DNA of 62,939 nucleotides, filler included, from Perkinsus chesapeaki ATCC PRA-425 (Eukaryota; Protista; Perkinsozoa): assembly GCA_013115145.1 (NCBI GenBank). It is 11 parts of 11 records of this genome, joined end to end, with 100 filler letters (N's around TTAATTAATTAA, not from the genome) between each part and the next. Parts side by side here need not be neighbours in the genome. Positions count along the whole stretch, not along the records: positions 55,845 to 61,156 come from JAAPAO010001172.1; 10 more parts are not named here. One strand, written 5' to 3'. Every line of letters begins with the position of its first letter. The stretch's first letter is position 1. A model generated the notes under the pieces. That model searched no databases. It had not been told where the DNA came from and worked only from the letters and a program-made list of their open reading frames with translations. Made by a program: the position numbers and the translations under genes. This document shows, piece by piece, positions 1 to 61,156 of this stretch.

Positions 1-1829
1 CAAACTGGCTGGCAACTCGCACGCACGCGCCAGAGTGGCTGATGCGCACACGTGCAGACTAGCATCAGCATTGCCTTCAACAAAATGATTTATAAAATTT
101 CGACGAACTCTGAAGGCGCTTTACTTTTCAAAATGTCCTTCAGTATCGTTCTGGGATCCTATCCTCTATGGCATTTCGACCATAAGAAGTGAGGTGTTAT
201 ATACTATTTCTACAGTGTTGTATCGCAAGGAATAGGTCCCTTATGACAACGCGGAAGTTGTGCGTGCTGTCCCTGCTCGACAAAGCAGGCGAGCGATATA
301 ATTTAAGGGCGCATTCTTACAGCGCAGAATCAGCGTCGCGCGCCATGAAATTCCGCAAGTACCTTCACCTGGTACTAGAGAACCATCCAGAGTTTCGGAA
401 AGAGTCTGTTGAGTAATAAGCCTTCTTCTGTTGACGGTCGTACGTTGTAATGTCCTTGTTATTTGTATATTATTATTTCTCGATGATCGACTCCTCGCTT
501 GATTTTCTAGCAGATCTCATGGGACTCGAAAATCACTACGAAAACCGCGAAACATCAGCCACTTCAACTCATAATAATACTGGGCTTAAAGACGCCCAGT
601 GTCAAACACTACCAACACTGCCTGATCCGAAAACAATACTGCATGTAGAAGTACACATGTCTGGATTCTGGTGAAGCACTTTCAGTTGGCCGTAGTCGAG
701 TGGCGATCACTTAGTGCGCCAAATAGTAAATACATCACTGAGGTTACCTGTGGGCATCACTTTCACAGCAGAAGTAAAAATAATAGTATAACAGAAATAG
801 GTGTATTGTAAAGGCACTGAGGTCAAGACGGGCCCTTTGAAGATACCTGTATACGATGTTAGTGATAAGATAGAAATAATATTATTAAATCCGGTGAGAT
901 GGGTTATCGATCGTCTCATTGCGATTTCATGATTACTGCTGCTGCTGCTTTTACCCAAAAGTAATAATAAGCAATAATGTGCACTATTAAGCTGTTTATT
1001 AATAACGATATCAATGCCAATGTGTCAGTAGGCTACTAATAACAACAATACTATATAATATCGAGCTCAATACTTATCATCATACATTCCTACTCTTCAG
1101 GACACTTGCTATCAACACTATTCTTTACGTATACCTTTGATCAACATTAATGGTGGAAGCTCGGTGATTATGGCAGATTGGTTTGCCCTAGCATCATCTA
1201 AGGGACTCCAAAAGAATGATGGAGCGGCTGCTCATGTGTTTAGTAAACCGTAAGATTATGATAGCAGCAGCAGCAGCTCGTGGGGACTTTGAGTATAGGA
1301 ACTCGAGCAGGACTGATAGGGCGATGATGCTCTCCTCGGCCGAGGAAAATATGCACCAGTTGTATTTTTCTGAGATGTTAAAAGCTTTCCGAGTGGTCTC
1401 TTGGATTGATGGCGATATACTTTAGATTAGTTGTAAAGACATATAGAACTTTTTAAATAGATGACATTATGAGGATGATGGTTGGTAGCTTTCTGCTATA
1501 TCATTAAGCAATCACATATATATTATTACTATTAATTTTTAGCATAATCCTGTTGAATCATAATAGCAACTAAATTCTACAGTAGCTGTAGGAAAGGGTA
1601 TAAGGGTCTATAACGGAATAGTATCAGATGTATTTCAGTCAACCTCTGGAGAATCTTCGGGCAGCTTCGATACGTTCCTGCTCGGCTCCTGGCTCATTCG
1701 CTAAGGAGCATCCTTGTGACTTGGATATTTCCAATAGAAATGCGCTGATCAGTGAGGAAATACCGGCCGTCAAAGTAGCCTGGCGGGCACTATCAGTGAA
1801 GAGTAAGGACAGCTAGAGGTGTCAGAAAG

Positions 1830-3566
1830 TGCAGCTTCTTAGACAAGAAGCGGGAGAAGAAGCCGCGGGTTGTTACATATGAAGAGATGTGCGAAATGGT
1901 CCCATTTGAGCGATTGAAGGGAGCATCGCCGGTCTATGAACCGCACCCGGGAGACCCGATCGATTTGAAGATCTCGGAGCTACTTGAGAGAAGATCCTCG
2001 GATCTAGCTAAGATATGTCGGATTTACAGGCGAGTGGGTATGGAAATGGTTGTAGAAGATTAGGCAAACCAATTATTGTGAGGAGAAAATTTCAAGTTAA
2101 GATTCGGAATATTTCATTTTCATGGAGAGTAACTCGCCCGGGTAGAGCTTGAGTACCCTCGGTAGCTGGTCATTCTCGGTTCAGTTTAGCAAGGTCTGCT
2201 CGGCTAACCCTTCCGCGCAATCTCTGCGGCACACTTAGAACAATATTCGGTGATGAAATCACGCAAGCTGACCTACCAGATTTATTGGCAAAATGTAGTC
2301 AATCAGTCAGATTTATTGGTAATATTTCATTCGCAAGGTAAGAGCCATCGCTTCTCAAAAGGGAGGGAGCTTCTACGATATTTCGTGGAAAAATTCCCGT
2401 GCGTTAAAAGTGCTCACGGAACTTCTTAATGTCCTTCAATGATTCATTCCATAATGACGGTCCGCCTCAGACTGGTGTTCATGATGCTGTTTTAATTATA
2501 CTCGATAGTATCGAGCCTCATGTTTAATATTTTAGGTCTCCGTGAGTAACACAATTCTCTGTCTCTCTTACTGTTAGGCACCTGGACACTACCTATTGAA
2601 TGGTCGTATGGTTCAATTGTCATTATCATCCGATCCTCTTCACGCCGAATCTGGAGGAGTGTCGGTGATGGATGGTCCGCTAGTTAGCCAATGCTTAGTC
2701 CCCTATCTACAAGGGTCCTGTGCTACTGCTAGATACGCCTCTTTGCCGGACAACAGGTAAGTGAAGGGCTTCTTGACGACGAGAACAGATCTTGGGGTAG
2801 CCGTAAAAATGCCTAACTTGGGGTGGGGGCAAAAGGTGTCCCTAATGCCTATCTCGAGTACCTTATTAAATTGTGTCAAACAGTGCAAATTATCTTGATA
2901 GAAAATATATTTCTAGAAAAAGGAGAAAAAAGTCAATTGTTGCATTCCTCCTCCTGCTCCTCCTACCTGGCATAACTTCGTCATCATCCACCTCAGTAGT
3001 TCTTCTATATAGGGTAACGCAGTGTGGGAATATCTGTTCGGCTTCTTCCTCAACCGATGGGTATGCCTTGTGAGCTGAATTTCCTCACCATTTTTATACG
3101 GGACTTATGCTCAAAAAGTGCATTCTTAGCTGTTCGGTATTTCCCTCAAATTCTTCTCTAACCAGCCGCCACGTGCACATTTTCCCGCACTGGGGTAACT
3201 TCCTACCTACAGTTTATGACTACCAGCTATGAGCGCATCATAGCTGTATAAATACAGCTATGTCGCCCTGCTGTCAATATTGGAACTCATGACTGCATCT
3301 TCGAGACACTCAGGGTTGCTTAGCTATTGTGTTCGGATGCCATTATCTGCAGTTCGCCTCTCAGCAACTGCGTCGACCTGAGTGTCCATCGCGGAGCAGC
3401 TCGAAGGCAGCGTTTGAGTTTCGGTGATGATCATCGGGCATACGAGTATTCGAAGCTGCTTGGGGGGCCTCGAGAAGGGCAGGCGAGATTGGACGCGATG
3501 AGGATAGCAGTGGAACAGGTGGAGCTGAGAAGGCAGCATGCCAGAACTAGTGCCATGTCCGGGTAG
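1830..3566 (+). CDS. Putative multi-exon hypothetical protein; boundaries uncertain
   Basis: Open, coding-like segments bounded by GT/AG, e.g. LDKKREKKPRVVTYEEMCEMVPFERLKGASPVYEPHPGDPIDLKI near 1840-1990, PGHYLLNGRMVQLSL near 2580, and a last exon ending at TAG 3566. No family recognised. Confidence 0.3.
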
Positions 3567-3662
3567 AGAGAGGTTCTTTAATTCACAGTTTCATTTGAAG
3601 CCCGTCTGGCGTTGGGGCGGAGGTTCGAATCCCGGTGGAGGCATTTATTTCATATCTTCCTT

Positions 3663-6600
3663 ATGGAGATCGACACATCGGCAGGGTTAGGCTACGACAA
3701 CCCTGCCCTGCGAGAATTGAAGAGATCTGTGTTCGGACTTGACGGTGCTGATGGTGCTGAGGAGGGCGTCCGAGGGAGCCTGGCGGAGCATATCAGTCGG
3801 GTGTTGGCGGAGATAATGAGGAGGAATGATGGAGACCATGAGAAGTTGATCGAAGAAGATGCTGGAAGGTATCTGGAGGAGATTAGCAGGTAGTAGGGTG
3901 ATGAAGGAGGACTATGTCTGGATGCTAATAGACAACTTGGTAGATAACATAATTCTTACAGCTACATCGGGTGTGTCGGGTGGCGGTGTAGGTAACGTGG
4001 AGCAGAGCAACTCACAGACTTTTATCAATTGATATATATTATATTATCAAACCATCTGTTTACTGTAAGGGCTAACTATAGGGTGTTATATTTTGCGCAT
4101 ACGAACATCGAGTAGAATGTCTAGAACGCTGCTGTGCCATCTTACATTGTAATCATCACGTCTCGCCAGTCTTGGGCCAGAACTGACCAGAGAAGGAGAG
4201 AAAGCAACTCATTGGAGGGTCACTCGAGATTGGATCCCACCACCACCACCACCTCACTATCAGGTATGTTAAGGACCTGTATCCAGCCGAGAATGAAGGA
4301 AAGAAGTCAGAGGCTTTGATATTAGAGGTAGCAAGTAGCCAACTCGAATTCAGTAGGCTTTGAGCAATCAAACTGGCCAGCAGCTGCAGCTGCGGGGCTT
4401 AAGTTGTTAGACTTCCTTATACTGTATATGGAGTAACTTGTATCACGGGAATCGACAAGGAGGAAGGGAAAGGTTTGAACACTAGAACTAAGTACAGGGA
4501 GAATCATTATAGTTATATTAGCGCTGTTGTTGATGCTGAAAATTGGTTGTTTGTGAGGGTGAACGCGGTCAGCTATGACGCCTCTTCGTTATCATATCAG
4601 GAAAATGCCAAGAAGTTGCTGAAGTTTGTGGAAGGTGAGATATCAGCTCGAGAGAAGCCATCAGTGATAGAGTGTCCGATACCTGTGGAGGATCCTATTT
4701 GCAATCCGACAGCAACAGCGCTATTGGAGGCAGCAGGTAGGGGGAGAGGAAGAATAAGGTCATTTCGAGCTGAGAGTGTATTTTCCTATTCTCGACTTGA
4801 TAGCCCATTGAGCCGAGATTCTGTATAGAAGACGTTGTTATATGGATACATTATATAGGTATATCGCGATGTGTTCCATGGACTTCGATGAAACGCGCTT
4901 TGACGTACTTGATGACTTATTTCTCTTTTACGCACTGTGTAGGTTTGAGTATCTTTTGTTTTGCGCACTGTGTAGGTTTGAGTATCTTTTATTTTACGCA
5001 CTGTGTAGGTTTGAGTATCTTTTATTTTACGCACTGTGTAGGTTTGAGTATCTTTTATTTTACGCACTGTGTAGGTTTGAGTATCTTTTATTTTGCGCAC
5101 TGTGTAGGTTTGAGTATCTTTTATTTTGCGCACTGTGTAGGTTTGAGTATCTTTTATTTTGCGCACTGGGGANNNNNNNNNNNNNNNNNNNNNNNNNNNN
5201 NNNNNNNNNNNNNNNNNNNNNNNNNNNNNNNNNNNNNNNNNNNNNNNNNNNNNNNNNNNNNNNNNNNNTGAGTATCTTTTATTTTGCGCACTGTGTAGGT
5301 TTGAGTATCTTTTATTTTGCGCACTGTGTAGGTTTGAGTATTGGTGGTTCGACTGAAGCTATGTTACTGAGTACCCGTATGAGGGAGCTGGCTAGTAGGC
5401 TGGGAAAGGACGCTAAGATGCTTAGATTCTGGGGGAAGATATTAAGTAAGCTTTGGGGGGATATCAACATCAGAGCAAAGAGTCATAGAGAAGGGAAATC
5501 ATATGTTAGGAGGTCCAGAAGGAGCACGTTTGGCGTTGGTCTAGGAACCTACTTCCTTGTGAACTTTGACCATACCTCCTCCGTATTAGGCGTACTTGTT
5601 TGTTCTGTGAGAAGACATCTCTGTGAGGGTAGACGACTCCGTGTGTGAAGTCATCTACGATGCATTATCGATGCTGTATGTATGATAACGCAAATGATCT
5701 ACCAGTGTCTTATCGAAATGATGAAAGTGTTATGAAAAGCGAACATCATCATCGTCTTAATAATATGTTGCACTTGTACACTGCATGTGCTTGGGCGGGG
5801 GAGTTAATTCTTTCTTTTCACGGAAAACTGGGAATTTCCACGGTACATTGTCGCTCGTCTGGAAGCCACCTGTGAGTGCTTGTTCGGACAATTCTCCCGG
5901 AAAGGATCGTCTACGTCCTGAACAGTTTCGGTTTACTGAATCTAGGGGGGGTTTTCAGTTCTTGAAAGGGTAAAAGTTCCGACGCGGGGACTCGAACCCC
6001 GGTCGCGTGGGTGAGAGCCACGAATCCTAACCAGCTAGACTACATCGGAGGGTTGTCAAAGAGCACGTATCGATTGTACAGTGTCGACTTCAGCCACCGG
6101 ATCTCAAGACTATTACGTCGCCGAGGCTTTACTTCCATCACTTCCTGAAGAGGAGCCGCCCAAGAATGCTAAGGAAGCTGCGGAGTAAGCAAATTGATGA
6201 ATCGAGGTTGATAAAAATGAAACCCACAATAGTAAACATTTAATCTGCCTCCCAGATAATAGACGTATGTACGTGTGACAAGTGGTAAGTATCGTGAGAA
6301 TGCCGTCGGAAAAATATAAACATTTCAGTTTTACTTGTACAAAAAAGTAGCCTATCTCGCGCGGTGAGTGTCCTCCTGGTGAGGAGTTCTTGTGGAAGTA
6401 TTGGTCATTGAAACCAATCTTATTATAATTAATCATCGGCAATCGTTCCCCTTCAGACTCTTCACAGCGCCAGAAGTCCGTGGGCGACGTGGTGGTAATT
6501 TATATACATACTTTGTGATACAGGATATCACCACTAATAGTTGGAGCGAGCTGCCGCAGGTAGGGGAGCATCATCTTGGAGGTTTTTTGTGTGATAGGTA

Positions 6601-11784: not shown

Positions 11785-12333
11785 GTTGGAGAAGACCAAA
11801 CCCTGGTGTGAATTAAACAACCTAAATATTTAAGCTCTACAAAATCGATCACATGATCGATTATAAAAATGGCAAAGCCTTAGCGGAGCGACGCAGCATA
11901 TCTTTTTCGGCGCACCATATCAAAAAATAGGAACAGTGGGACGCTGGTCCGGCAATCAAGTACTTAGTTGACTAAATCGGAGCTCTACTAGTAAACAGTT
12001 GGATCTCAACGTGGTGAATCTTTGACCCCCCGTACGTTCGCCTTTAACCTCGATATGCTACAGAGGCTGTTGTGATGGGCAGTGGTTTGATGAAAGAGAA
12101 ATAGTGAGTGCTGGTGGATCATCTAGAAGCCCTCAAATGTGGACAGTACCACTGGTACTGTACCAGCCTGTAGGAACTGCTATCGTTAAGAGGCCGTTGT
12201 CGCTCAATATACCTTATGAAAGATTCTCATTACAGAGTCCCGAGCGCATTTCTTGGACATTTATGGAACAGAATTGTTAAAAATTGAAACTCCTACGGAT
12301 GAGCCTCTATCAACCTCCCAGGAATCTTTTAAA

Positions 12334-14864
12334 ATGGCTAATAGACCTTTAATAACCGAGGATTCCTCATCTGCCGATTTAGCGCCGACTATTCAACGGA
12401 ATGTGACTATGCCGCCCACAGTTCACAGCGGGGCGCGTGAAGAGGAGGAGGAGGCTGCCAAATACAAACATGATCAGCTTGTTATATCACTCCTCATGGT
12501 AGCTGTTATAATAACTGGGTAATAATAACTTAGAGAAATCATTCAACAACCCAACATCGACGACCATTGGATCGTAGGGGCTCTCCACTAAATAGGTCGT
12601 CGACGACGGTGAAGCTTCCTGGAGATCATCATTTGGTGTAAATGAAATATAGACTCTTGGATAGTCACGGTTAGGGATGATATAACATCATCAGGTGGCA
12701 TCCTCATTGTTACATTGCATACCGTGTATAATTGTCAATTATTCGATTAGGCAGCCACTTCAAAGGATTCGTTTTAACATCTTGAAGCTGCTCCGACATT
12801 AACAGCCTTTACTCTGTCTAATAGCAGCTCATCTTTCTACATTAGTTATCTGCCATACCTACTGTTGAGTATAATTATTACTCTCTCTTATCGATCAGGT
12901 CAACAGACGTGGTTGCTGGTAAAATTCGTGCTCAGCCATTAGGCCCATACTCTGGTTTTGTAACTGCTATAGCAAATGCTATTGTCTACTTCATCATATA
13001 TATCTCAGCATGCCTTTACCGGTATGGCAGAGGTTTCATTTCCAAACAACAGGTAGTGGGGTTCGGCGTATCTTCCAATCCTCCTCAACTGTTATCAACT
13101 CCTCTTGGTTGGAGATCTGAAAAATCATATGACTTTCGCCCGTATTGCTGAGATGTACGCTTTTTGAAGGACCCTAAAATTACGTAGTGAGCTGCAAAAT
13201 CCACAAAATTTTAAAATTTTCCCGGGAAATTTTTTGGAGCTGACATTCCTGTCATCAGATTAAATTTGTATGGTCTTCTAGTGGTGAGTGGCGTCTATTA
13301 GCCATTGCGGGGTTATGTGATGTATTGGGGCAAATACTACAGTTTATTGGTCAACCGTATGTCAGTGTTATGGTGTATCAGTTAATGCTGCAGGCCCAGG
13401 TAGGGAGGATGGTATAAGTCGCACTAAATTTCACCTTCTACCACTCAGCGTTGAGTGAGACATCTAAAAAATACGAATTATTCTATTTCATTGCGTCGGG
13501 CTGTAGACTGACCTTTTAAGGAAAATTATTGTCTCTACTACTCTTTTACAACTTAGTCATTTTCGAATGACAGTGCCTCATGGGAGAGACTCGGCTTGTG
13601 TGCGTTTTGATCGATTCACGCCTGCTCGCCTAGCTGATGGTGGCATGGTCCAATATCATTCGATTGCGTCAACTTCATGGAGCAAGAAATCATTATGAGC
13701 TTTCCGCACTTCCATTCTGAAAGTCTTGGCGAAGGGCTCGCAAACCGCGGTGCGGCGGGTAAATCATGGCAAACCGGATGAGCCTGTGGGGCTCTTTGCG
13801 GTCTACTTAAACATTTGACCTATTCTCCATCTATTATCATTCTGGTATGTCTATCATCAATCTATGTGTTGCCTGTTTAGGTGCCATTCACAGCGTTATG
13901 GAGCGCGACTTTGATGCATGTAAAATACGTAGCAATTGAGTTGATTGGTCTCCTCGTCGTCGTACTCGGTTCCGCCACTGCATTCATGCAGTTGTCTAAA
14001 GGTGGCATGGCCAACACAAACATTCCTATGGCAACATTAGTGTGCCTCTCAACAGCGTGCACTGCGATGAGCTTCACATTGAAGGAGATGGTTTTCCGTC
14101 GATATTCGGCCAAGTACGGTGACGGCCTTGATATATTCGTTGTCAACTCTGGAGCTTCGGTCTTCTCGCTTTGCTGGAGCCTGCCGGTATCGAGTTTTAT
14201 AGAATGGCTGCGGCAACCAGTTGGGTTTGGTGAGCGCCTCGAGGATGGCTTCTTTTGCCTTGTGGCTGATAGGCCCACGGAGCTCTCCTCATGCCAGTAC
14301 GCCACAGTGACGTATTTCGTTTATATGTCACTTAATATATTTTACAACATCAGCGTCTATGCATTGGTTGCAAAGCACTCGGCGCTACTAACATTTGTCT
14401 GTATGAAACTGACAGCTCCTTTGGCGGCGATATTATCACTGGTGCCGTGGCCGTTGATAGGGTCCTCTAGGATACCTTCTACGGAGTGGCTTGCACTTGC
14501 AGTTATCCTGGCGGGTGTGTTTTTGTTCCGACACGGCAACCATGTAAAGGACAAGGTGATGGCAGACGCTCATGTCGGTGCTACTGATTGGATGCTTTGT
14601 TGCTTCCCGATGTTCCACAAGAAACAATATTATCAAACATTGGCAGAAGAAAACGAAGGAAAATTCGACGAGTTGGACGACAAGTTGGAGACGCCGCTGT
14701 TGGCAGATAATGTGCCGCGTAGAAGTGTATCAGCGCCAGTTCGGGGACGGCACAGCGGTAAAGGAGGCTACGTTTGCCCGGATGGCCGACGGGTCTGTTG
14801 TCCGTCGCAGTGCAATAGAATGGAGATGACACTATGTCGTTGTGAAGCACCATTTATTATGTGA
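12334..14864 (+). CDS. CRT-like (chloroquine resistance transporter family, DMT superfamily) membrane transporter, multi-exon; 3' end approximate
   Basis: Exons MANRPL..LLMVAVIITG|STDVVAGKIRAQPLGPYSGFV, and ORF 13881-14864 with many hydrophobic helices and CRT-like motifs LKEMVF..LDIFVVNS and YMSLNIFYNISVYALVAKHSALL. Confidence 0.75.
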
Positions 14865-55744: not shown

Positions 55745-56771
55745 NNNNNNNNNNNNNNNNNNNNNNNNNNNNNNNNNNNNNNNNNNNNTTAATTAATTAA
55801 NNNNNNNNNNNNNNNNNNNNNNNNNNNNNNNNNNNNNNNNNNNNACAATAGTAAAACTCTGCACTTAGCCTAGCTCTTGTAAAAGGAGACAGCGGATTGT
55901 GTGCCAACACAATCACACTCAAGTACCATCGGCGGTTACCTTTACGGTTACTATCCCGCCCCAAGGGGCTGGTTCATCTAGTTGCGGCACTATCCCGGCT
56001 GGGTGGAGGGGACGTCCCCCAATGACGATCCGTGGCGGAGTGGGGAGGGTCCCACGTAGCCTTTTGTGTCACACGCGCCGCGAGCATCTATTCAAAAACC
56101 ACAATCCCTAACCCCGTTCTCGTCACCTACCCTACACAATTCCTCAAAATTTCCATTACTACATCCGGTTGCACACACTCAATCGGTAGCGCATGCGCTG
56201 TGCGTTCAACTGAGTGTCTCCCTCAAGGTTTCACCCCGACACCTCTGCTCACCGACCTGTCCTCCATCTTGCAATCTTACAAGCTTCTGCCGCTAGTTTT
56301 CGCTCGCCCCCTAGCGCGACACGAAACGCACGCGATGTGTTGCACGTGTGCCATGCGGCAACTTTCGCTTTCAGCGTCACGCGTAGGCCATTCCGCATAT
56401 GTAGTGTCTCCCGCGCGTTACACGGCGTGTCAGGTTTATTGTCGATCTCTCATTCATGTTAACCATCACTCGCCAACCTCCCACCCGGTGTCCTTTCTCT
56501 ACCGCGTTCATGCTCCCTACGTATACCACATCCTCTACGTATACCACATCCTTCTAATTCGTCTCCTGCGCGTCGACCGTTCCTCATCTACCCCTAACGC
56601 CGGGTTCCTACCTTGTACTCCTCTTGGTCTCAATGGCGCGACGGTGACGCCGCGTCACGGCGTCGTTCGGCAGCATGTCCTGTGTGTAACACAACATGTA
56701 TCGGCTGTGCCCACCGTGGATCATCTATGCACTTCACAGGTATATACATCCAATCGCTTCATGTACACATG

Positions 56772-57407
56772 TTAAGCCTTCCAAGCAAGCAACTGTTGCG
56801 TTACCTCTGTCGCTTTTGCAATAATTGCTGCCGCGTTCACCGGTTGTAGCTTAGCGTCTGCTAGCGTGCCTAATATCTTATCTGGATGTAATCGTAAACA
56901 CCACGGTTTTAGCTCTCGTAGTGAACATTTCTGTCGTAGGTTTAGAGGGTTATTTTTCGGCCCACTAGGCCATGGAATGTCGTCTACGGTTATTTCGCGT
57001 GGTCCCGACTTTAGAAATGTTGACCACCCGTCGTCTTCTTTCCGTGGTTTCTTCTGCCTCCGCCGTTTCTTCACTCTTTGCTTCTTCGTCTGTGGTCTTT
57101 GGCGTTTTGTCCGCGGAGGTTCTGGTTGGCGCGTCGTATTCTCTCGTACGTACAGTTGTAGTATGCGCTGGTCGTCAAGGCTTAACTTGTACTCGTAGCT
57201 GCTCGATATGACTTTAAATTTCTTCCCATGACACACTCCACTTCGCGCTCGTAATTCTCCGATTCGTCCATCTAAGAGGTACTGCCTGATCTCCTTTTCT
57301 CTTTCTGTTAAATCTGCTGCTGCCCTTATTAGAACTGTGAAACACCTAGCATCGTTTGCCTGTATCATGGTCTCTATATCTGGTGCGAAGCTACGCGGAA
57401 ATGACAT
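56772..57407 (-). CDS. 211-aa basic protein with a C-terminal DIPWP...LRLHPDK (J-domain-like HPD) module
   Basis: Complete ATG-to-TAA ORF with a K/R-rich NLS-like stretch. The DIPWP..HPDK pattern recalls NFKBIL1-type and auxilin-like C-terminal modules. Confidence 0.6.
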   Translation of the reverse strand: MSFPRSFAPDIETMIQANDARCFTVLIRAAADLTEREKEIRQYLLDGRIGELRARSGVCHGKKFKVISSSYEYKLSLDDQRILQLYVRENTTRQPEPPRTKRQRPQTKKQRVKKRRRQKKPRKEDDGWSTFLKSGPREITVDDIPWPSGPKNNPLNLRQKCSLRELKPWCLRLHPDKILGTLADAKLQPVNAAAIIAKATEVTQQLLAWKA

Positions 57408-57802
57408 TTACTAAATTCTAAAAGACTGACACGTCGTTGTCCAAGCTCACTTGTTCGTCTGTCTCCTACTGGTTCTCCTTTAATCCACAACTTCTACACT
57501 ACCACCTCTGTGGCGACGTATACTTCTCATTTATGCTACCCTTAGGCTACTATTACCCTACCTACTACCCTACTCGCTTACTAATAGGAGGTAATGTACA
57601 TGAATAATACTGTAATACTTACTATTGGCTCATATGCTACATCTATTGCGACCTACTCCTTCATTCAGGTAACGACTCTACAGGCCTCAGATTCTTACGT
57701 CCCTCTGCTTACTCGCGCCCTCCCCTCCCACCAAGTATGTCCGTAGTTCCTAACTCAACCACGTTTTCTACTTGCACATTCAACAGCAGCATGGTCTTCG
57801 CG

Positions 57803-60800
57803 TCAATCGGCCGTTACATCCTCCGTAAGTGGCTCTCTCACTATCTCTCCGCATTGTACTAGACTCAGGTGCTCACCGTTCTCTGTTCTCCTCTGCACGA
57901 CGCTCCATACGTCCAAGCGTTCCTCGGGGGTCGCGGCACCATATAGTGATTGAGCTGTTGTGATCGACTCTCGTTCGACTCGAAGTCGTGCATAACGTTG
58001 CTCTTGCTTAGATTTAGCGAAGATGTCGAAGCCGATAACGAATGCTAGGACGCCGAACGGACGGAGATGCAGTGCCGTTGCTGCTGAGCCTGCGTGCGAT
58101 CCTCGGTTGTGTTCTCGAAGTCGTCGTTTAAGGTCTTTGGTCTGTCCGATGTATGAAGTACTTGGCCACCTCATCGACACGAGCAGGTAAACTGCGCCTC
58201 CGATCGTTCTTGGAACTCCTATGTCTTTTGGGACCAGTGGGTGGAATCTCACTGATACTCGGTGCTCTGATTCATTGCGTCTTCGTCCGCTTTGCGACAG
58301 CCTATCGAGCACATGTTCCGTCAATAGATCCCACTGTGTGACTCTCTTCAGCAGGTTCCCAATCGCGGTGATATTATCCGTCATATCCCCCACCAGGGTT
58401 ATGTCCTCCAGCTTCCGTACTCTCGAGAAGAGTACATACACTTGACTTTTCAACCACAAGGTGTAATCACTTTCGGACGTCGAGATTCTACTTGCGATTT
58501 TTCTCAGGGTATCTCCCATTGTCTGGTGTATGGTCCCCGATATAAAGGGACGAAGAGGATATTGATACCGCCGTCCGGTTCCATGCCACAGCTCTTCCAC
58601 CGGTGACATTTGTCGTCGTATATTCATGGTCTTCCACCCAGCTTCTTCCAAGCTCGAGTTAGCAGGTAAACTCCGTATACTACTGGGCGCCACCACTACT
58701 GTTAGTAGCTCTTCTGCGTTTTCGCCTGCGGGTAGTCGCACTAGCCTGCAGATCTGGCTGTTGTAAAACCGTTTGTTTGGGTCATTTGCAATAAATCTTA
58801 GTAACCCCCTTTCGAGCAGTACAAGCTCTTCCGTAAAACGACTTCGTTTGTTCAATGCCTCGGTCATCTGCTGCGTAGCATCTTGCCAAACCACTCCGTT
58901 ATCTACCGTGAATTCGTCAACGGCTTTAATACGCCTGTACGCAGTGCCTCCTGCAATTTCAGACTCTATGAACTCTCGTTCCGCTCGTTGCTCGGCAGTT
59001 TTTTTCCCGAAGATTCTCAATACATCGCTCCCGACTTCGCTCCATTCTGTACGAAAAGTACAATTGCTCCTAATCAACTCCTTGCACTCTGTAATCTCCT
59101 CATCGGATGGTGGTAACTTCCGTATTATATGTAAAACTCTTCTCAGGTATGGACAATTCGCAGCTCTTACTTCCCCCTCAAGCATAATTGGTCTGAATAT
59201 CGTCAACATCATGCTACCGGTGAACACCGACGACTTCCGTATGGGCGGTAATTGCAGCGGATCCCCTGTTCCTAAAATGGCCTTCCCGCCGAATGGTGCT
59301 GACGACCCGTGCACGTATTGTAGCACTTTGTCTACAGCGTCTATAAGATCACCCGGTATGGTGCCTATCTCATCGAATACTAGTACATCGATCGCTTCGA
59401 CTACTGCTAGTCCTGTTTCAGTTGATCCCAGTTTGGCGAGCGCCGATTCCGCTGCGCTGCTGCTGTTGGTGAAGCGGATGGGGATCTTGAATAGACTGTG
59501 GATGTGACGCCCACCAAGAGCTGCTGATCGCTCTGCACCGAGGCTGGTAAAGGCTACTTGCAGGCCTCTGCTCATTGCAAAAGCTGCGGCTCCGCATATG
59601 ATGTATGTCTTCCCACTCCCGGCTGGTCCACATAAGATCAATCCTCGTTCGTAACTACTTCTCCCGCCCTCATAATTTTCTATCAGGTTTACGCAGTCTT
59701 CCATCGCTCCACGTTGTGCTTGTAAAGACTCATCACTCTGCCCTACTGCTTGGTGGACCGTCGGCCTCCATTCGTATGGTTCATGTCTAGTGGCCGATAT
59801 AAGCCTCTCGGCTGACGGCAAGGAGCTCGCAGTAGTTGTTAGTGCCTCCGCTACGCGGGCCTGTAATGATTGTTGCGTTCAAGGGTTGGATCTAATGCTT
59901 ACTCTGTAGGTTTGTATTTCTTCTTTGGCCTTCGATGCCACCTTAGCTCGTATGGCGCTCTCGAGGACTAGTGGCGTTGCACAGTACACGATGGTCGAAG
60001 CCGTGAAGAGTTCAAGTACGCATCGTTTAGCGTTGCAAATGTCTCTATCGAAGTTTCGCGAGCCTCCGGGTGTGTATAGTACCTGGTATTCGATTCTATT
60101 GTCTCTCATTCCTTTATTACCTGTTCTAGTATGTACCGTCGCATCATCTTATTTATTTCTCTGTCAGTTACAGCTTGTGCGTTCTTCACCAGGCCCGCTC
60201 GCTCGAAGCTCACCTGTCACAAGTAGGATCGTAGCGCCTGTTGTTATACGGCCCTATTCAACTGTACTACTTTCAGGTCGGCAACGTCGAAGAGGTCAAG
60301 TTCTGTCTCGAACCTCCCCAAGGTCAGCAATAGGTGAACGAGGAATTTATGTCCGTGGTGGGGAAGAGCGCTCGAAAATACGACCACACGCCTTTTGCTC
60401 GAGCTGTCGACCAACCTCCTGTGAAGCTCATCCCTTTGTTGGGCTTCTTCAAGTAAGATAACAACTTCACGTGCTCGCTCGTCTGTATTGGCTTTTTCTT
60501 GGGTATATGCTATCAGTCGATCCAAGTATCTCTTCTGTACTCGGATAATCTTCCCGGTTGCGTCAATCCAACTCGACTCCCGGACATCTTCTTTTATCAT
60601 AGCGTCATACACTGTTGGCCTTTCACGATTATTTACGGGAAAGTCGGTTTTTTTGGCAGGCTTTGACGTGAAAAATTTTGTATATGTTCGCAAGTCATCG
60701 ATATATAGTAGCTCTGGTGGCCTCAGACTGAAGTGGCATATAGGGTCTGGTAGTATATCACTTCTGCTTGCCTCAATGGCCATTACTCGTTGACAATTTG

Positions 60801-61156
60801 TATGCTGCCCCCATTGTGGTAGATTTAGGCGCTCTCGCGTTCTAATCGCCGCTGGCACATCTCCGTCATCCAATTCTCTCCCTTTTTTTGTTTCAGAATA
60901 CCCCCTCTGCTCTCGGCGGGACTCGTATTGACGTGTATGTAGTCTGCATCTGAATGGACGTATTTGAATCCATGCAGTACGAATCCTGCTTCTGTCAGAC
61001 TTATTGTCTTGCCGTTCACCTGTCCTCGATGTCTTCTCTGCTGGTCAGGTTCATCACTCCCAACTTTCACATTACCAAACCCACTTACGGGATGAACGCC
61101 ATCTCCGCGCTCCAACCTCACCTCGTCTTCTGTGCCTCCTGCAACGAACTTCAATT
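57803..61156 (-). mobile_element. 5'-truncated spliced gene of a probable Helitron-like element: post-Rep-like segment, PIF1 (SF1B) helicase and C-terminal GIY-YIG nuclease; about 1,070 aa visible
   Basis: Helicase motifs GPAGSGKT, GGRHIHSLFKIP, VFDEIG, TGDPLQLPPI, GTIHQTMGDTL and QVYVLFSRV. Nuclease motif GAVYLL..SYIGQTKDLKRRLREHN. Introns 59861-59902, 60083-60120 and 60214-60270, plus one -1 frame change at the A7 run 60883-60889, join four ORF-track fragments. Confidence 0.75.

Follow-up and report, generated by a model that had tools for sequence, protein, structure and literature searches.

Probable 3′ part of a Helitron-like transposon gene ending in a GIY-YIG nuclease on a contig of Perkinsus chesapeaki

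The DNA analysed here (62,939 nucleotides (nt) with filler, in 11 joined parts, hereafter the window) comes from assembly GCA_013115145.1 of Perkinsus chesapeaki ATCC PRA-425, a clam parasite. The gene in question lies at positions 55845-61156, which make up the entire 5,312-bp contig JAAPAO010001172.1 (L002). This contig most probably (at roughly 85%) carries about 40% of a Helitron-like rolling-circle transposon's one large gene, namely its 3′ part. In relatives the full protein consists of an N-terminal region (with an OTU protease in some members), a Cys/His cluster, an HUH Rep domain with its YxxKY motif, a conserved linker of about 330 aa, a PIF1-type 5′-3′ helicase and finally a nuclease. 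The coding sequence in the window begins shortly past the Rep tyrosine motif and runs through to the stop codon.

The NCBI annotation of the contig holds one minus-strand gene (FOZ/FOL47_000836), whose product is a 947-aa “hypothetical protein” (P0001) with its start codon, ATG, at 60783. Intron coordinates were obtained by mapping P0001 onto the DNA, and the coding sequence was compared with the nearest relative, the intron-less P0011 (55% identity), which is encoded on contig L001 of run SRR12548988. The resulting model contains 1,071 codons on the minus strand, in four coding pieces with three GT..AG introns and one frame change, and takes in an open reading frame (ORF) of 672 codons at 57803-59821. 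Its features, from 5′ to 3′ along the gene, are as follows.

60888..61154, minus strand: first coding segment, 89 codons, running without a stop into the contig edge; corresponds to the linker beyond the Rep tyrosine motif; aligns with L001 9573-9851
60883..60889, minus strand: run of seven A (A7) at which the frame steps back one base; both sides align with a single L001 frame
60271..60885, minus strand: continuation of the coding sequence in the shifted frame; conserved domain lying between Rep and helicase (RPPELL..., VVVFS..., HHGHKFLVHLLL...)
60214..60270, minus strand: predicted intron 1, 57 nt, GTAGTA...GACAG; gapless at junction 172/173 against P0011
60121..60213, minus strand: exon of 31 codons
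60083..60120, minus strand: predicted intron 2, 38 nt, GTAATA...ACCAG; gapless at junction 203/204; its removal shifts the frame
59903..60082, minus strand: exon of about 59 codons
59861..59902, minus strand: predicted intron 3, 42 nt, GTAAGC...TTACAG; gapless at junction 262/263 against P0011
57803..59860, minus strand: last exon, including the stop codon; helicase and nuclease
58412..59629, minus strand: PIF1-like SF1B helicase core (Pfam PIF1 3.6e-15, AAA_30 3.8e-8)
57932..58204, minus strand: GIY-YIG nuclease domain of SLX1/URI type (Pfam GIY-YIG 3e-6)

All three introns begin with GTA and finish with CAG, and the alignment of spliced P0001 with P0011 contained zero gaps at the three junctions. 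Since degraded coding sequence that had been skipped by a gene finder would leave alignment gaps, the introns are best read as precise insertions relative to an uninterrupted gene, and they are predicted to be of spliceosomal type on the strength of this comparison with relatives. An earlier inspection made without database searches (the sequence-only reading) had assembled a frame of about 1,070 aa from four pieces, with introns of 57, 38 and 42 nt and one change of frame, and this model matches both the P0001 exons and the P0011/L001 alignments. Rfam and tRNA scans of the contig returned nothing above noise.

The same reading had listed every SF1B/PIF1 motif as present, motif V in the form TIHQTMG, followed by an intact GIY-YIG domain, and each of these could be located. 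Walker A (GPAGSGKT) occupies residues 340-347 (59629-59606) and motif Ia residues 367-386, followed by motif II (VLVFDEIG), motif III (GTGDPLQLPPI), motif V (residues 705-711, 58534-58514) and motif VI (VLFSRVRK, 58435-58412). The Q of motif V is no sign of decay, because this position varies within the family (K in 9, R in 4, A in 4 and G in 1). Over the part that is shared with relatives, the P. chesapeaki protein retains 32 of 33 family-invariant residues and 12 of 13 that are nearly invariant.

In the nuclease domain the catalytic residues Y820, Y832, R842, H846, N847 and E891 are all retained. When a profile of the family's GIY-YIG domain was compared with the PDB, the best match was SLX1 (4xlg, 1.2e-14), along with 7cq2, 6seh and the plant protein HIGLE (7wme), and bacterial UPF0213 proteins came after these. 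Residues 775-947 of P0001 were modelled using AlphaFold2 (predicted local distance difference test score 79, above 90 in the core). A Foldseek search with this model returned SLX1 or HIGLE structures as all 11 of its best PDB matches, and nothing else at E ≤ 0.001. The nuclease is thus SLX1-like by sequence and by predicted fold.

An exhaustive protein search with P0001 yielded 8,231 proteins at E ≤ 0.001 and 284 cluster representatives at E ≤ 1e-30. Family lengths and architecture were drawn from the best 150 of these 284 representatives, 149 of which were scored with profiles. (A word-indexed search with the 672-aa ORF returned only distant bacterial-type PIF1/RecD proteins; its length window hides relatives of more than 2,000 aa.) Most of the best 150 relatives are 2,200-2,800 aa long (up to 3,596 aa), and P0001 matches their C-terminal 900 or so residues. 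Almost all family members come from metagenome assemblies, and diatoms are among the carriers of PIF1+GIY-YIG clusters in the Atlas.

Eighteen full-length members, with a mutual identity of only about 25%, were aligned. Their consensus contains a Cys/His cluster followed by the three classical Helitron Rep motifs: TYFxTxTCN, the HUH motif EFQxxxGNxPHxHxxxW, and YLAKYAAGxEE, in which the first tyrosine is invariant and the lysine and second tyrosine nearly so. Pfam recognised PIF1 in 17 of the 18, GIY-YIG in 14, Helitron_like_N in 11 (best 7e-8) and OTU in 3 (best 7e-9). A profile of the Rep region had a single match in the PDB, the Helraiser transposase (7lcc, E 0.008), which fell exactly at the HUH and tyrosine motifs. 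Rep and GIY-YIG profiles were then built from our own alignments and used to score the 149 best relatives, with the following counts by length.

Relatives of at least 2,000 aa (n=61): Rep in 61, GIY-YIG in 54
Relatives of 1,200-1,999 aa (n=33): Rep in 33, GIY-YIG in 29
Relatives shorter than 1,200 aa, fragments (n=55): Rep in 5, GIY-YIG in 44

Every scored relative of at least 1,200 aa therefore has a Rep (94/94) and most have GIY-YIG (83/94), and the Rep is N-terminal to GIY-YIG wherever both occur. Because of these counts, the fusion of Rep, helicase and GIY-YIG is regarded as a constant feature of a deep family and not as an occasional capture.

The truncated 5′ end of the gene can be placed against these relatives. 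Base 61154 aligns with L001 9573, which corresponds to about residue 1395 of P0011, some 10 positions past Y1381/Y1385; in the column alignment the first aligned residue falls about 45 columns past the Rep tyrosine motif. The upstream segment is in the same frame as the rest of the 2,304-codon ORF of L001. Within it, GKTISLTEAGFVLHGFKYVHSDADYIHVNT aligns column for column with the family consensus GRxxSxxExxWxxLxxxYVxxxxxFVHVxTxPxExR that follows the tyrosine motif. The sequence-only reading had likened this segment to the stretch after Rep motif 3 and had proposed an HUH Rep in the missing 5′ part; the column alignment bears out the former, and homology, with a Rep upstream in all of the longer relatives, supports the latter.

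Contigs assembled by Logan from three DNA runs (X1, X2 and X3) extend past 61156, by 577 bp in X1 and by 5,866 bp in X2 (an 11,069-bp contig) and X3 (6,140 bp), so the truncation of the gene was made by assembly. The 5,866 bp suffice for the approximately 1,400 missing codons. We infer the Rep of the P. chesapeaki copy from its relatives.

The closest relatives are found in perkinsid material. In Perkinsus olseni, contig L005 (JABANM010002154.1) has 2,065 open codons from its first base (1-6195), with Rep, helicase and GIY-YIG in one frame. The NCBI model at this locus (P0187, 1,532 aa, “partial”, with introns) appears to mis-split an uninterrupted transposon ORF, and the NCBI models of both species would accordingly be truncated or mis-split transposon genes. 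Run SRR12548988 contains two elements, L001 (P0011) and L004 (P0186, a single ORF of 2,246 aa). A FastTree phylogeny of 108 family members placed P0001, P0011, P0186 and the P. olseni ORF in one clade with support of 100, divided into two deep lineages (P0001 with P0011, and P. olseni with P0186), both of which occur in SRR12548988. L004 and the P. olseni locus were about 67% identical at the DNA level, which suggests that the run derives from a perkinsid or a close relative. When the flanks of L001, L004 and L005 were compared with those of the P. chesapeaki gene and with one another, nothing was shared except one short stretch past the stop codon in L004 and L005. In L001 the GIY-YIG domain is encoded apart from the 2,304-codon ORF, in an ORF of a different frame (12260-12367) that lies 62 nt past its stop; helicase and nuclease are parted there by a frameshift or by a short intron.

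Signs of mobility were found in the wider family. Four separate long contigs of a long-read metagenome (ENA ERZ25074608; L003, L006, L007 and L008) are 98.6-99.5% identical over about 25.8 kb; their protein group (P0013) is 30% identical to the P. chesapeaki protein. These units have sharp shared ends, with the Rep-helicase-GIY-YIG ORF in the middle and other ORFs on both sides. Their ends could not be matched to either of the two canonical patterns (TC/CTRR with a 3′ hairpin; HLE2 hairpins with asymmetric inverted repeats). Across the family, clusters at 90% identity contain up to 165 members.

Three further observations were made on the ends of the 25.8-kb units. A diverged copy of the last 25 or so nt (…CGCTAGGTGGTC) abuts the 5′ end on its left, about 30 nt inside that end there is a G+C-rich palindrome, and conserved patches persist in the flanks on the right of the 3′ end, as if insertion had occurred into a repeat or were site-specific.

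It is possible, although we propose it tentatively and at less than even odds, that the Rep-helicase-GIY-YIG elements constitute a distinct rolling-circle transposon lineage, old and widespread among protists (perkinsids, diatoms and many uncultured eukaryotes), with the SLX1-like nuclease an integral part instead of captured cargo and with some members as cargo carriers of about 26 kb.

Several points weigh against assigning the P. chesapeaki gene to a Helitron-like transposon. The Rep domain lies outside the window, the contig edge falling just after the Rep tyrosine motif, and in relatives the Pfam Helitron_like_N scores (28-29 bits) are close to the gathering threshold of 28.9. The window gave no definable terminal hairpin, inverted repeat or TC...CTRR end, and searches of the contig, L001, L004 and L005 for terminal inverted repeats, hairpins and tandem repeats gave nothing convincing. 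At high identity the element looks low-copy in P. chesapeaki, because a single contig spans 55954-61156 in both X1 and X2, two contigs cover it in X3, and its word depth is even; there was no sign of further near-identical copies in the contigs of these three DNA runs. The introns of this copy are absent from relatives, which fits long residence or domestication, and the two RNA runs listed contain none of the gene's sampled words. Finally, the role proposed below for the GIY-YIG domain is one that we infer.

The strongest of the alternatives concerns the state of this copy, which would be a dead relic if the −1 frame change at the A7 run were inactivating and its gene not expressed; this we consider rather unlikely. 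The frame change is present without an indel in the X1 and X2 contigs and therefore cannot be put down solely to an error in the NCBI assembly. Relatives read straight through the site, a homopolymer deletion is the simplest reading of it, and the two RNA runs lack the gene's sampled words. However, roughly 1,070 codons continue without further stops or frame breaks and with nearly all invariant residues in place. The site itself reads CAA AAA AAG GGA in the upstream frame and thus holds the slippery heptamer A_AAA_AAG in phase, from which slipping back by one base leads precisely into the frame homologous to that of relatives; expression of the P. chesapeaki copy may occur by way of such a slip. 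In X3, moreover, both contigs end exactly within the A7 run, which hints at length heterogeneity among haplotypes. A 20-nt GT..AG span over the run, which would also restore the frame, was rejected as too short and because its removal would delete residues that are conserved in P0011.

Less probable still, and in our judgement improbable, is domestication: perkinsids would have kept an old element of this architecture, for example to act on replication or repair intermediates, and the gene would have gained introns and ceased to transpose. The single-copy-like assembly with its even depth is in keeping with this, as are the three lineage-specific introns, the long intact ORFs in P. olseni and SRR12548988, the two deep lineages (which could be old paralogues) and the retention of 32 of 33 invariant residues. 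Yet the Rep catalytic motifs are fully retained in the closest relatives, the P. chesapeaki copy bears the frame change, its sampled words are missing from the two RNA runs, and the wider family is multi-copy. Position also argues against a conserved host locus, with no flank common to the contig and L001 or to L001 and L004/L005. A syntenic orthologue lacking Rep, which the sequence-only reading had named as the mark of a host gene, was not what the comparison returned: the closest relatives carry Rep and share no flanks with the P. chesapeaki gene.

Origin from an integrated large DNA virus or virus-like element, of which the contig would be a fragment encoding a PIF1 helicase and GIY-YIG, is very improbable. 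PIF1-like helicases of Nucleocytoviricota do occur among the structural neighbours in the Atlas, and some relatives lie in units of about 26 kb with other ORFs, but neither capsid nor polymerase genes nor any others of viral type were seen, the Rep resembles that of Helitrons and the gene contains introns of spliceosomal type. Least probable of all is an ordinary cellular PIF1-family helicase with a nuclease domain and no relation to mobile elements: although Pfam finds only PIF1 and GIY-YIG in the window, a Helitron-type Rep lies upstream in every sufficiently long relative, the first 460 residues run colinear with the linker that follows Rep, and the nearest helicases outside the family share only 23-27% identity.

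Two further features lie downstream of the gene on the same contig.

56772..57407, minus strand (that of the gene): ORF of 211 codons with a basic, K/R-rich middle and a WP...LHPDK motif
55845..56002, no strand assigned: terminal high-copy repeat of the contig, with an internal junction at 55917/55918 (word depth 600-1,300; 105 in the main contig, X1)

The WP...LHPDK motif of the 211-codon ORF recalls J-like domains. No Pfam or NCBIfam match was obtained for this ORF, the Atlas gave weak J-domain leads, and no counterpart was found downstream of L001, L003, L004 or L005, so that its membership in the element is unsupported. At the repeat, word depth rises 6- to 12-fold over 55918-56002, many different neighbours attach at the junction, and the contigs of all three DNA runs break within 55918-56002. 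The repeat had no Rfam or tRNA match.

Transposition of the Helitron-like element preferred here would proceed in steps of which the first are familiar. Rep would nick the element strand at the ends and hold it covalently through its tyrosine, the helicase would peel the nicked strand off in the 5′-3′ direction, and the freed strand would be reinserted at the target. Nicking with covalent attachment, 5′-3′ unwinding and strand transfer are established biochemistry for Helitrons and Helraiser. At the donor or the target, the SLX1-like domain may then cleave the opposite strand, a flap or a branched intermediate. It takes the position of the apurinic (AP) endonuclease (APE) of Helentrons, whose presumed role is the second cut. 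We know of no established function for the extra nuclease in Helitron-like elements.

The kind of element is known; its Rep-helicase-GIY-YIG variant is widespread and essentially undescribed. Compared with Helraiser and other Helitrons (HLE1; 7lcc), the family shares the HUH motif, a tyrosine motif of YxxKY type and a PIF1-like helicase in the same order, whereas the similarity is weak (E 0.008) and the family proteins are about 1,000 aa longer, with the linker of about 330 aa and a C-terminal nuclease. Helitrons have no extra nuclease, while Helentrons have an AP endonuclease and often an OTU domain. With Helentrons (HLE2) the family has in common a giant ORF running from HUH Rep through PIF1-like helicase to nuclease, an upstream OTU in 3 of 18 members and, in one relative, a G+C palindrome just inside the 5′ end. 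The nuclease differs, being an SLX1-type GIY-YIG domain and not Exo_endo_phos/APE; Pfam found no Exo_endo_phos/APE match in P0001 or the 18 full-length relatives, in which GIY-YIG holds that position. Because the defining APE domain is replaced, the element was not filed as a Helentron, and the likeness is one of architecture only.

In contrast to the nuclease domain found here, SLX1 has a C-terminal RING/PHD-type zinc finger, which binds SLX4. The two are alike in their best sequence and fold matches (SLX1/HIGLE) and in the catalytic Tyr, Tyr, Arg, His/Asn and Glu. The P. chesapeaki nuclease is without the zinc finger, with about 55 residues after the domain and no Cys/His cluster among them, and instead of partnering with SLX4 it is fused to a transposase. 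As a small and well-understood domain, it offers a handle for finding out where in rolling-circle transposition cleavage of the second strand or of a flap is required.

A literature search pairing Helitron with GIY-YIG returned one precedent, HelenSM92, and otherwise placed GIY-YIG in Penelope-like or other elements; a search pairing Helitron with SLX1 returned nothing relevant. HelenSM92 is an HLE2 family of Sphagnum magellanicum, for which a one-line note describes a captured GIY-YIG that was transposed with RepHel (PMC11417382). Going by that brief description, HelenSM92 has a single captured domain, whereas here the fusion is constant across a family of about 25% identity. Hundreds of diverged members place a branched-DNA nuclease of a different fold at the position of the AP endonuclease.

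Penelope-like retroelements provide the other comparison, as mobile elements whose enzyme also ends in a GIY-YIG domain, although theirs is joined to a reverse transcriptase and the one described here to an HUH Rep and a helicase, with a nuclease that is SLX1-like. Retroelements are themselves split between APE and GIY-YIG nucleases. Helitron-like elements show a parallel division, which suggests that these transposons repeatedly require a second DNA-cutting activity.

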